From Pelomyxa schiedti (taxonomy: Eukaryota > Protista > Evosea), in the NCBI GenBank assembly GCA_020536535.1, contig JAHLWZ010000582.1, forward strand, positions 1 to 64,000: a stretch of 64,000 nucleotides of DNA, given 5' to 3'. Position numbers and translations under genes: made by a program. Shown in pieces: positions 1-36,379 of this stretch. The number at the start of each line of letters is the position of its first letter. The stretch's first letter is position 1. A model generated the notes under the pieces. The model ran no database searches and had not been told where the DNA came from. It was given only the letters and a program-made list of their open reading frames with translations.

Positions 1-268
1 TCGGAGCCGCCGCGTGGGGGCGGAGCGGGTGCCGAGGAGGACAGGGATTCCCCGGTGTTGCTGCTGCTGCCGCCGCCGCGGCGGGGAGGGGGAGGCGGGG
101 TCTCCGAGACGGACTCGCGGGGAGGAGGCGGCGGGGGTGCCGCCGATGAGGAGTCACGCCGCGGGGGCGGGGGAGGCTCTGGCCCGCCACGAGGCGGAGG
201 AGGAGGGGGCTCCGAGTCATCCCGGGGTGGCGGAGGCGGGGCCCTGGAGCGTGACTTGCTGGAGGATT
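1..268 (-). CDS. Partial exon of a proline-rich protein (repeated PPPPPR motifs), runs off the window edge
   Basis: After a probable AG acceptor near 269, the minus frame reads KSSSKSRSRAPPPPPRDDSEPPPPPRGGPEPPPPPRRDSSSAAPPPPPRESVSETPPPPPRR... and stays open to the edge; upstream exons not resolved. Confidence 0.55.
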
Positions 269-27768: not shown

Positions 27769-29639
27769 GATGGAAGATGTGAATTTATTCAAGTGCTTTC
27801 CGCTCCTGTCACATCAAAGACGCCCTTACGGAGCAGTCGCGACTTCCAAAAAAATTGCGAATCTTGCAGAATGCCCGTCCGGCGTTTGCAAACGTCGTTT
27901 TCGCGGTAATGATCATTACTGGTGATGTCGTGAACAATATACTAAAAATGGTGTGAGCCTGTCATTGCCGGTCTAGTTATTTTGTGGATGCTCTTAGCTC
28001 GTTTGGTTCCTAGTGGTTTGTATGAAAACCATCTTTTTTTTTAGTATGTCATTCATTACCCTAACTTTCTGTACAGTGAGGCTGCGGGTTGTTGGGAATT
28101 GTATTGTGGCCTGTCAGGTTGCCGGTATTGTGTTCTGTATCTTGTTTGTGGTCATTTACCCCCAGTCCAACTTGCATGAGGTTTGTGGTATTCTTTTCTT
28201 ATCTGAAATACTAAGACTACTACAATACTATTAATAGTTTCATGTACAACCATCTCACACAAGAATTATAAATTATAAGATAAGGGAACCTTGGGTGATT
28301 GTCTTCGCACCACTCCTGATTCTGCCATTGATTATTGGAATCCCTATGCTTTTCTCATCCATTTCCGACTGTTTTAAGAAAAAGGATGGCAATTTGTGGG
28401 TAAGTTCGGAGCCTCGTGGTAATGCAATAATAACTTCCAGTGAGTGTGGGAAATTCTTTGGAGACATCATTCGTGGTGTAATATTACTGAGTTTCCTAAC
28501 CTTAATTGAGAGCTTTCTCATCGTTCTCTTTTTTCACGTTCGGTACTCCTTCAGGATTTTGTAAAAGCAATTAATGTGCGGAAATAACAGAAACCACGTG
28601 CCTACTGAGATTTTCGTCTATGTACCTTTGTGGACTATTTCTTTGGTTTTCCACTGTTGTCTCTCCTTAGCATTACCTACTTTTTAGTTGTTACTGGTTT
28701 ATGGGGTATTGTTGCTTCTTCACTGGTCCATGTTGCGTCATCTCCCTCAAAAGACTGTTCCCTTGAGACCAGTATTTGGAGACCAAAGCAGAATCTCAAC
28801 AGTAAGCAATTGAAGTATAATCTAAGCTGGTAACATTAAGTGAAGAGAGACTGCAACGAACAGCCTGTTGCTATCAAGAAACAGCAGGAGTTTACTGTTG
28901 GCATTATTTCGATAGTGACTTGTCTCTTTGTTGCAATTTCCGCCACACTTATCTGTCTAAAACGGTGCTTCACGGAGTCCATTCCATGGTATAGCCATCG
29001 CGAAATGATGTAGATAAATAACTCACGTTGTAGGGCTGCAGTTTTCTTGCCCTGGCAGGTAGCACTCTCTGCGTAACAGAATTTAATGGCCAAATGAAAA
29101 AAAAAAAAAAAGGTGGATACTTGACTTGTTTGCTTTGATATCTGGGGCTGCACTCATTGTCTACTCACCAGGCGCCGGCAGTGATGCACTGTTTCCAGTA
29201 AGAGAACCCTAATGTGATTACACTACGGACACCTAAGTAATAGAATACAACACGAACCAGACCATCCCATCATCTGTTTTGACTCACACATGTTGTACAG
29301 ATACACCAAGTCTGCCTGTTCGAAGTTGTAGTAGCTGCATTCTCGGCCTTCGAGGTCTCAGTCCTCCTCTACCTCAAGGACAAGGACGCGACCACCAAGG
29401 CCGTCGCCTCGTCCCTCCTCCCGCTGCTCCTCCCACAATCCCAATCCGACCGACATGCAATCTCAGGAGTCGCCGACGCCGCCGGGACACGGGAGGGCTA
29501 CGGCGCCGCCATGCTAGTAACGGCTCTGGGCGCCCAGGCTCTGTCTCTGTTGCTGGGCCTCATGCTTGTGTGCGGGAGAAACAGACACGCCCATGTTTTC
29601 TGCAACGGCGCTGAGGATGGACCCGAGCAGGACACGTGA
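27769..29639 (+). CDS. Multi-pass membrane protein of unknown function
   Basis: Series of hydrophobic plus-strand exons (VAGIVFCILFVVIYP, IVFAPLLILPLIIG, LLSLLSITYFLVV, ALSLLLGLMLV); boundaries approximate. Confidence 0.5.
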
Positions 29640-29774: not shown

Positions 29775-29899
29775 GCACAGCTGCGCTAATTCACAAGTGT
29801 TTATCATCAGGCTGGAAGGTGGGTCACCACCTGCACACCCCCCGTGAAAGGGATTATGGTGTGCTACCATCACCACACCCGCGGATTAGCACAATGTGC
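29775..29899 (-). promoter_or_regulatory. SECIS element (type II) in the 3'UTR of the DsbA/FrnE-like gene, with a 19-nt insertion in helix II
   Basis: Helix I CGCGGGTGT/ACACTTGTG extended by GCTAAT/ATTAGC; core GTGAT (29873-29869) and TGAT (29809-29806); helix II GGTAGCACACC/GGTGTGC-AG-[19 nt]-CC; apical ATAA plus ministem TCCC/GGGG. Confidence 0.7.
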
Positions 29900-33631: not shown

Positions 33632-36379
33632 ATGTTGAAACATAGGGGAAAGGAGAAGTTCCGCATTGAGTTCACGGTTACCGTGCAAAAGGTCGCTGGT
33701 TGTTGGTTATTGCCTCCCTCTGACTTTTTTCTTTTTTTACCCGTGCAGCTCATTGGAATGCGTGATTACCCTTCTTCAGTTGTGTTCTTGTCATGGCGAA
33801 GAGGTTTTTTTTTTTTGCCCATGAAACACAATAAATCCCAGAGTTTTCGTTCCCTAACTTGTGGAGGGAGCAAGAAGAAGACCGGTACTACGAAATTAGT
33901 TAAAGTGACACCACCTCCTGGTGAGGATACTCCTTTCAACGAAAAGATTTCCTTTTCTTGCACTATGTTTAAAGACCAGTCAACAAAGCAGTATGACTCT
34001 AAACAAATGAGCATAACACGTAAGAACACACTGAGTGCAGACTAGTTTATTTAACACTCTCTTTGATTTAGTAAAAGAAGTTACAAAGAAGTCCCCCAAG
34101 CACATTGGCAAATTAAGATTGAACTTGGCCACTTATGCAATGAATCCTGCTGGCACAAGCACCACAACAACACAGTCCACTCCTTTTGTTTTTGAAAGGA
34201 AAAAGGAACTAAGCTCCTCAAAGCCAACTGTGTATGTATGTAGATTAAGCTTCTCTATCATAAGTTGTCCTTCATAACCACCTCTCTAGCTTTCTTTTGT
34301 GGCAACACCACTTAAATATGGAAATCATAGTATTGCCAAGTGAGGCTCCTTTACAATTTGTTCCTTGTCACTGTTGCACTTTTTAGGCTTGACAGTGAGG
34401 CTGGACCCCGACCAGGCCTCATGATCAAGGACATTGAAGGGACCCTATACAGTCTTGAGGCATCCTCTGCCAAGTCTGACACAAGTATAGACTCTGCCAG
34501 TGTTGCCTCAGATGTTGATGTTCGTATTTACTTAAACGAGTAGTGTAAGCTAAGATTCACAGCTAGAGGCTGAAAAGGACCTAACTCTTGACACCCCTAC
34601 GGATATCTCTCCCGAAGTTCAAGCTTTACAGGAAGAACTTGAAGTAATGACAAACTTTTTGAGAGTATAAGCTCAACATTTTTCATAAAAAAGATGGTCA
34701 GACTGGAGAGCTTCGAAAAGTTGAATAGAATAAAGGAACAGGATGCTGAGCTGCAAGAACTAAGAGGCAATTTTGCAAGCACACAGAATTCCTATCAGAT
34801 ACTGGTAAATAATTCTTTCCATATTAGATTGGCTCTGCTGACCCACTTTAGTGGCAAAATACAACGAAGCTATTGAAACAAGCTGATGTAGAATTGAGAA
34901 AATTTACATCAAATCCTCCCGATTTCCAGCAAAAGTTACAACAAATGGTTTAGTATTTGATACATTTATTCAGCTCAGCTTTCATTAGATGGCCAAATCG
35001 GCACCGCTTACATCCAGTACCACTTCCACAACATCAACATCAACCTCCACCACGACATCTTCGACAGTAAACAGAGAGGTTACTTCCACATAAATGTATT
35101 TTTTTTTGGCTCAATAAAAATATACAGGTGAGCCGTGAATCTTCGTTTATTGAACAGCAAATATATCTTGCACCAGTTCAATTTGAGCCAGATTCTGGGA
35201 CACCTGTTACCGCGAAATCTGTAAAATTCCTGTCCTCTCCAATTTACACTATAACTATTCCCCTTGTAGATCATGAGTCAACTGGAGGTATGGAAGTGTT
35301 TTTCATCTCCACTTTCGGCGACTCGTAACTTCTTTGATCGAATTTGTGGTGCAATTGAAACTGTCTGCAATGTACATTTCTAGTTTGTAATGAACCTGCC
35401 TTCTCAATACTCAACCAAACTTTCTTGCTACAGCAAAAACCTGGCCTTCCACGGATGTGTTATTGGTTATCTGTAACCTATGGCCTAATTACCCTGTGTC
35501 GGGACCGTATGTTACGAAATGCAGACGAGAAACCAACATTATGTGGCTTCGAGCAAGCTCTGACGAAAACTGGCTTCATTGTCTACTCTACTGTTGTTGC
35601 CCATATCACAGGGGTAAGAAACATTTATCCGGGTACCCTTTTCTCACTGCATGAATAGAAATTGCAGTTATATCTCGTTTCAGCTTTACTGCAGGAACGA
35701 CAAGAAGAAATGTACCTGGCAGTACAACTTCTTTCCATTATTTCTGACTACCATTAGTGCCACAAGACTTCTTCAGTCAGTTCCCCGAGTTTCAACAGTG
35801 TTTGGGGTTTTGGACAGAAGCCTTTTTACGTTACGAGGAAGTAGGGTACCTGAACCCGTGGTTCAACAATTTTTCACACAGATTTTTTACTTCATCTCTG
35901 CTCATCTCTTTAACCATGTTGCATGCAATGAGTAGTGTGACGTAGTTATGGTGCTCTATTAACATTCTTTAGAATTTCTGTACCTCTTAACACTGGGCTC
36001 GCTTTACAACTAGCAGTAACGAGATTAGAGGAATGGGCAACAAAAAATAACCTTACCAACACAATGTAGCGTTAGCCATTTCCATTCGCACTATGTCTCA
36101 CTACCTCTCAGGGGACAGCTCGAGCCTCTGACTGAAACAGCAACGGTGCTAGTATCGGTACTTTCTGACAATGCTCTGCTTGCGCATTCTTGTCAGGCCC
36201 TTTCCGTCGCTCAGCTTAAGCACTTAATACTGACCCTGACACCAGACATGTACTTTTTCATCTCTTTCTTCCCTTTACCTTCTTACACTACAAACAGAAG
36301 CCCAACACTCGCCACCAAGCTGAAAATCAGTGATGATATCAAATTCAATGAGACACTTATTCACCCTGTTTCCTTTTGA
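33632..36379 (+). CDS. NT-C2 (EEIG1/EHBP1-type) domain, coiled coil and Dilute (DIL) domain protein
   Basis: N-term KFRIEFTVTVQK..FLSWRRG..FNEKISFSCTMFKD..IGKLRLNLATYA; C-term VVQQFFTQIFYFISAHLFN..LEEW..LEPL..CQALSVAQL. Confidence 0.85.

Follow-up and report, generated by a model that had tools for sequence, protein, structure and literature searches.

Eukaryotic type II SECIS elements consist of a kink-turn core (UGAN/KGAW) with tandem G.A and A.G pairs, helix II, an AA bulge and a ministem, and SECISearch3 filters its candidates on "bending", that is, on a large one-sided insertion in helix II (PMC3753652). Binding of SBP2 needs the non-Watson-Crick triplet and at least two stacked Watson-Crick purine-pyrimidine pairs, with a 5'-strand G paired to a 3'-strand C at helix II positions 4 and 5; in assays with human SBP2, replacing position 6 or 7 with G.G weakened binding ~5-fold (PMC1874613). 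In our literature search, no publication reported a SECIS that is branched or interrupted by an intron, and none dealt with selenoproteins in Archamoebae. Two further kinds of structure are relevant here. Kink-turns elaborated into three-way junctions are known as k-junctions, and ultra-short spliceosomal introns (~15–25 nt) occur in ciliates and chlorarachniophyte nucleomorphs. Introns of ~20 nt are, to our knowledge, confined to lineages in which nearly all introns are tiny.

The window analyzed here is a 64,000-nt stretch of the Pelomyxa schiedti genome (contig JAHLWZ010000582.1, positions 1 to 64,000). An initial annotation, made from the sequence alone, had placed on its minus strand a SECIS interrupted by a 19-nt GU...AG segment and read the segment as either a micro-intron or an extruded hairpin. 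Genome-wide searches used the assembly of 52,367,397 bases in 5337 contigs, which was built from MDA-amplified DNA of single cells with Nanopore and Illumina reads (PMC8887013). A tRNA-Sec gene was identified at G000:C1146:9231-9316 (L034:1501-1587) with 67.9 bits (Rfam RF01852; cut-off 47) and a TCA anticodon (ARAGORN). Since the genome encodes tRNA-Sec, Sec decoding is plausible in P. schiedti.

The element lies in the 3'UTR of a DsbA/FrnE-like gene in which an in-frame UGA stands at the first Cys of the CxxC motif of DsbA/FrnE-type thioredoxin-fold proteins. The frame remains open for ~200 codons downstream of this UGA and is intact across five exons. Proteins were searched exon by exon, each exon separately. 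Exon 2 gave a weak match to Pfam DSBA (profile positions 11–27, E = 0.15), a low score attributable to the shortness of every exon, and a search for homologous proteins with exon 6 gave no match. Genome searches with Pfam DSBA and with the proteins of single exons returned the gene itself or no match. Family support for the gene itself is therefore modest; in its paralogue on contig C999, the C-terminal frame matches Pfam DSBA with E = 3.9e-5. A genome search with the pattern U-P-W-C-[YF] identified three further loci (on contigs C406, C999, and C2679) whose coding sequence is conserved on either side of the TGA (...YSD[IV]I-U-PWCYVGE). Two of the three, those on C406 and C999, have a sequenced 3'UTR, and both have a SECIS. 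The C2679 locus (G000:C2679:732-746, L013; YSDII-U-PWCYVGEV) is the fourth UxxC DsbA-like locus; it lies on a 1.2-kb contig, is close to the C999 copy, and its 3'UTR is absent from the assembly. A 194-nt copy of part of the window gene, 97.4% identical, occurs at G000:C917 ~33660-33850 (L016:662-851). It covers intron 1 and the TGA-containing exon 2, along with a portion of exon 1 and the first part of intron 2, beyond which the similarity ends; it is either a fragment duplicate or an assembly or amplification chimera.

Transcript evidence came from RNA contigs of four single-cell RNA-seq runs. Introns 4 and 5 appear as joints in RNA contigs, so that the gene is transcribed and correctly spliced there, and for intron 3 the loose end of an RNA contig is identical to the end of exon 3. 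A single RNA contig enters the UTR. It runs from exon 4 to position 29833 and ends inside the SECIS element, which shows that the mRNA includes everything from the 5' side of helix I through the 5' core, the helix II 5' strand, and the apex to the upper return strand. No RNA contig from the four runs covers 29832–29566, which leaves the 3' half of the element without RNA coverage. Another RNA contig, 698 nt long, has its end at 29565 (window 29300–29565) and derives from a neighboring transcript, so the end of the DsbA mRNA must fall between 29832 and 29566.

Coordinates of the gene, the parts of the element, and the other Pelomyxa SECIS. Positions are those of the window unless a locus is named.
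Feature	Position	Strand	Detail
DsbA/FrnE-like selenoprotein gene	30911-29970	minus	six exons, read from sequence
Exons 1 to 6	30911-30866, 30819-30734, 30618-30470, 30419-30327, 30286-30171, 30127-29970	minus	
Introns 1 to 5			46, 115, 50, 40, 43 nt
In-frame TGA (Sec)	30817-30815	minus	start of exon 2, motif ISDLA-U-PWCYVAK
Stop codon TGA	29972-29970	minus	
SECIS hairpin	29899-29775	minus	3'UTR, predicted fold
Helix I, 5' strand	29899-29875	minus	MFE and centroid fold
5' core GUGAU	29873-29869	minus	UGA of the non-Watson-Crick quartet; sequence
Helix II, 5' strand GGUAGCACACC	29868-29858	minus	11 nt, uninterrupted
AUAA bulge	29857-29854	minus	with conserved unpaired AA
Type II ministem UCCC/GGGG	29853-29850/29843-29840	minus	6-nt loop UUUCAC
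Helix II, 3' strand, first part GGUGUGCAG	29839-29831	minus	
Upper helix II (IIb), 3' strand GGUGUGC	29839-29833	minus	pairs with 29864-29858 (GCACACC), P 0.97-0.98
Side hairpin AGGUGG-UGAC-CCACCU	29832-29817	minus	P 0.87-0.99, -8.5 kcal/mol
19-nt segment of the initial annotation	29830-29812	minus	starts GU, ends CAG
Linker UCCA	29816-29813	minus	after the side hairpin
Lower helix II (IIa), 3' strand GCC	29812-29810	minus	pairs with GGU 29868-29866, P 0.72-0.75
CC	29811-29810	minus	after the 19-nt segment
3' core UGAU	29809-29806	minus	GA of the quartet; sequence
Helix I, 3' strand	29800-29775	minus	MFE and centroid fold
SECIS of DsbA paralogue on C406	L014:2109-2156	minus	
SECIS of DsbA paralogue on C999	L015:1386-1435	plus	
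SECIS of MSP (G-S-U-C-W-P) gene on C605	L046:1415-1464	plus	

Every SECIS part that the initial annotation had listed is present where it was placed on the minus strand. The element lies about 70–100 nt from the stop codon, with helix I starting 71 nt after it, in agreement with the "about 70 nt" given there. In the putative core, as read from the sequence, UGAU 29872–29869 stands opposite UGAU 29809–29806 and fits UGAN/KGAW; just above this quartet are two G-C pairs, G29868-C29810 and G29867-C29811 (P about 0.75). The apex has the AUAA followed by the UCCC/GGGG ministem around a 6-nt loop. The two strands of helix II are unequal, with 11 nt on the 5' strand and 11 plus 19 extra nt on the 3' strand, and it is when the 19 nt are skipped that 10 of its 11 positions pair, with one A-A mismatch. 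The 19-nt-deleted form folds with a continuous helix II at -52.4 kcal/mol (ViennaRNA). As the initial annotation had stated, removing the segment gives an 11-position helix with a single A-A mismatch and UGAU opposite UGAU. With the segment retained, the 131-nt stretch 29905–29775 has a folding energy of -58.5 kcal/mol (z = -4.11; none of 200 shuffles as stable), and the predicted fold is a three-way junction with helix probabilities of 0.98 (upper), 0.87–0.99 (side), and 0.72–0.75 (lower). Two other arrangements were considered and rejected. A GGUAGCACAC/GUGGUGACC helix, taken from a chance TCV_H5 alignment, would be separated from UGAU by 12 nt and carries almost no weight in the ensemble, and no helix II forms when the UGAC within the insert is taken as the 3' core.

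A strict scan of both window strands (GUGAU...UGAU, 10/11 helix, insertion of up to 30 nt, AA bulge) returned this single site, where ~0.6 matches are expected per shuffled window and ~0.001 per 300-nt UTR. Scanning without the strict core was not significant (39 loci versus 24 in shuffles), and identification as a SECIS thus rests on the core, helix I, the apex, and the gene context together. On these combined features, the element is very probably the SECIS of the DsbA/FrnE-like gene.

Three other Pelomyxa SECIS, located with a simple core-plus-helix scanner, were used for comparison: those of the DsbA paralogues on C406 and C999 and of the MSP gene on C605. Each has GUGAU, a helix II of 11–12 positions, an AA bulge, a ministem of 3–4 bp with a 4–6-nt loop, and UGAU(G). 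In each of the four Pelomyxa elements, the ministem follows immediately on the AA. All four also have G rather than A before the core UGA, and a GUGA core may be the norm in the Pelomyxa lineage. The initial annotation had suggested looking for similar insertions in other SECIS of this genome; none was present in these three.

Curated models gave no signal at these loci. Rfam SECIS models did not match the window or the local region even at E <= 10, RF00031 had no match in the whole genome, and Rfam returned no SECIS match for the loci of the three uninterrupted Pelomyxa elements. Because Rfam also misses uninterrupted elements, its blank result reflects a property of the lineage (the GUGA core) rather than the insertion, and the test is uninformative here. 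With the C999 and MSP elements as its training set, a covariance model recovered the C406 element that had been held out (17.8 bits, E = 0.008); the window element was not reported at E <= 5, and genome-wide the model returned its own training sequences only. A single-sequence covariance model was too specific, and MAFFT misaligned the SECIS elements. An SPS2 "GUGCK" motif pattern gave 17 matches, and neither of the two candidates examined had a SECIS. The expectation that genomic SECIS searches would overlook the element is reasonable, as both Rfam and the two-element covariance model do so, though Rfam misses the uninterrupted ones too.

The side hairpin proposed in the initial annotation is present, with a perfect 6-bp stem. 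A hairpin as stable occurred in 13 of 5000 shuffles and 56 of 20000 genomic 19-mers (~0.3%). CAG on both flanks allows four equivalent 19-nt cuts with an identical product, and the unit that forms the hairpin among these placements is 29833–29815. A DNA search found the whole element as a single copy in the genome, and a 22-mer around the insert has no second occurrence even with up to 3 mismatches allowed, indicating that the insert is not a mobile micro-repeat.

Intron lengths in Pelomyxa were sampled from 30 junctions estimated from exon-by-exon HSP70 matches across the genome. At 29 of these the intron is ~35–233 nt (median ~48), and the three shortest that were checked in the sequence itself measure 44, 44, and 43 nt. 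The remaining junction, an apparent "7-nt" intron, is a frameshift in a C6 run and not an intron. It lies in an HSP70 copy at G000:C797:86420-86560 (L053), where the frame changes in a run of six C and the HMM match contains four in-frame stops; this copy is either a pseudogene or the product of homopolymer assembly errors. Two HSP70 genes (G000:C1080:14668-16765 and G000:C768:790-2714) share the same exon pattern with near-identical scores, and their contigs are probably haplotigs or a recent duplicate.

The reading we favor, with moderate confidence, is a SECIS whose helix II extrudes a side hairpin and which is read without splicing. The self-complementary 19-nt insertion in the 3' strand of helix II would stay in the RNA and fold out as the 6-bp side hairpin. 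Helix II would then become a three-way junction whose lower part (3–5 positions) and upper part (6–7 bp) could stack as an 11-position helix. The insertion would spare the kink-turn core, in which UGAU faces UGAU, together with the two overlying G-C pairs, and the 5' strand would retain the core-to-AA-bulge spacing typical of the lineage. The Sec machinery (SBP2-type core binding, tRNA-Sec) would read the UGA as selenocysteine. In the predicted fold, the two G-C pairs correspond to the SBP2 determinant and sit below the insertion junction, and the junction and the A-A mismatch fall at helix II positions 6–7. With the SBP2 pairs kept and positions 6–7 disrupted, binding of the machinery and support of Sec insertion by the branched form are plausible but not assured. 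Against this reading, the branched layout was seen in one element only; neither an orthologue nor another branched SECIS turned up, so that the side hairpin has no backing from covariation or conservation. The perfect hairpin may reflect a recent palindromic insertion rather than selection.

A serious rival to the branched form, which we regard as possible though on balance doubtful, is that a recent 19-nt insertion has broken helix II above the core, such that Sec insertion is weak or lost and the gene is becoming a pseudogene or yields mostly a 16-residue peptide. The insertion is found in one of the four SECIS examined, and its junction lies at helix II positions 6–7, where mismatches cut human SBP2 affinity ~5-fold (PMC1874613). 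Redundant UxxC DsbA paralogues with an intact SECIS exist in the genome, the C917 fragment copy (194 nt, 97%) points to recent rearrangement of the gene, and a perfect 6-bp stem is expected of a young palindromic insertion. However, the coding frame downstream of the UGA has stayed intact through five exons, and a spliced mRNA is present; the insertion leaves the core, both G-C pairs, the 5'-strand spacing, and the apex untouched, and a self-contained insert does the least damage. The 19 nt could also be missing from the real genome as an artefact of assembly or amplification. The assembly derives from MDA-amplified DNA (PMC8887013), template switching can create small palindromic insertions, and a frameshift in a C6 run was seen elsewhere in the assembly, but a stem of 6 bp is unlike typical inverted MDA chimeras and the insert sequence is unique in the genome, which makes this explanation improbable. 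Equally, another element, or none, might serve the gene, with the hairpin described here not a functional SECIS. Neither the Rfam SECIS models nor the Pelomyxa covariance model scores it, yet Rfam is just as blind to three clear Pelomyxa SECIS and every lineage-specific feature is present in the element. The initial annotation had allowed for a better canonical SECIS elsewhere in the UTR, and a relaxed scan found no other UGA/GA-core hairpin there; we consider this reading highly improbable.

Splicing of the segment as a micro-intron (GU...CAG) would complete the SECIS with a continuous helix II, and the spliced fraction could then decide whether the UGA is read as Sec or as a stop. The boundaries, G|GU...YAG|, are like those of the gene's five introns, one of which also starts GUGUGG; the 3' end of the segment is pyrimidine-rich, and its removal gives a textbook type II SECIS. 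No RNA contig spans the 29830/29812 junction, since the single UTR contig stops at 29833, 2 nt before the segment. The last two letters of that contig are unaligned and match neither the genomic nor the spliced continuation. We read its end as a fragment end because another contig of the same libraries carries adapter tails, and it is probably a tagmentation or adapter/fragment end. The initial annotation had noted both the splice context and a length below that of the other introns, and the comparison holds (19 versus ~40 nt or more): the segment is less than half as long as the shortest of ~34 sampled introns (~40–233 nt), and the gene's own five are 40–115 nt, three of them RNA-supported. 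In addition, the GU and the preceding AG are predicted to be paired inside the side hairpin (P 0.99). The terminal AG follows automatically from the flanking CAG repeat, leaving only the GU as a coincidence (~1 in 16), and self-complementarity (~0.3% of random 19-mers) is of no need in an intron, whereas an insertion that stays out of the way needs it. The micro-intron is thus unlikely, and the least credible of the readings considered; it is disfavored rather than refuted, because the RNA contigs end at 29833. Of the two options originally offered, the extruded hairpin stands as a thermodynamic prediction, and the splicing switch loses ground on length and on a 5' splice site buried in a 6-bp stem.

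The window element is a new structural variant of the SECIS, seen once. If the branched form works, it would be the first natural SECIS known to us with a three-way junction in helix II. It would also mean that the SBP2/kink-turn machinery can accommodate a helix branching off the 3' strand a few pairs above the core, and that SECIS finders penalizing one-sided insertions can overlook genuine selenoprotein genes. Should the insertion prove disabling instead, the locus would offer a rare view of a selenoprotein gene in the course of losing its recoding signal. The locus is further evidence for Sec decoding in free-living Archamoebae, with GUGA-core SECIS that curated models do not detect.

Compared with known systems, the 19-nt segment resembles ultra-short spliceosomal introns in its GU...AG ends and its length, but nearly all introns are tiny in the lineages that have them, whereas sampled Pelomyxa introns are ~40 nt or longer. 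The predicted fold shares with k-junctions a kink-turn beside a three-way junction; unlike in k-junctions, the third helix is predicted to leave the non-bulged strand 3–5 positions above the G.A pairs and not at the kink. Relative to the C406, C999, and C605 SECIS, the window element is alike in core, 5'-strand spacing, and apex. Those elements are uninterrupted, whereas the return strand in the window fits only with the 19 nt skipped (10/11). The closest likeness is to the eukaryotic type II SECIS, with which the element shares the UGAU/UGAU quartet, the two G-C pairs, the 11-nt 5' strand, the unpaired AA, the 4-bp ministem, the long helix I, and a place in the 3'UTR of a UxxC redox gene. It differs from that type in the G rather than A before the UGA, as in the other Pelomyxa elements examined, and in the 19 extra nt of its 3' strand, which are predicted to form a hairpin of their own and so turn helix II into a three-way junction.
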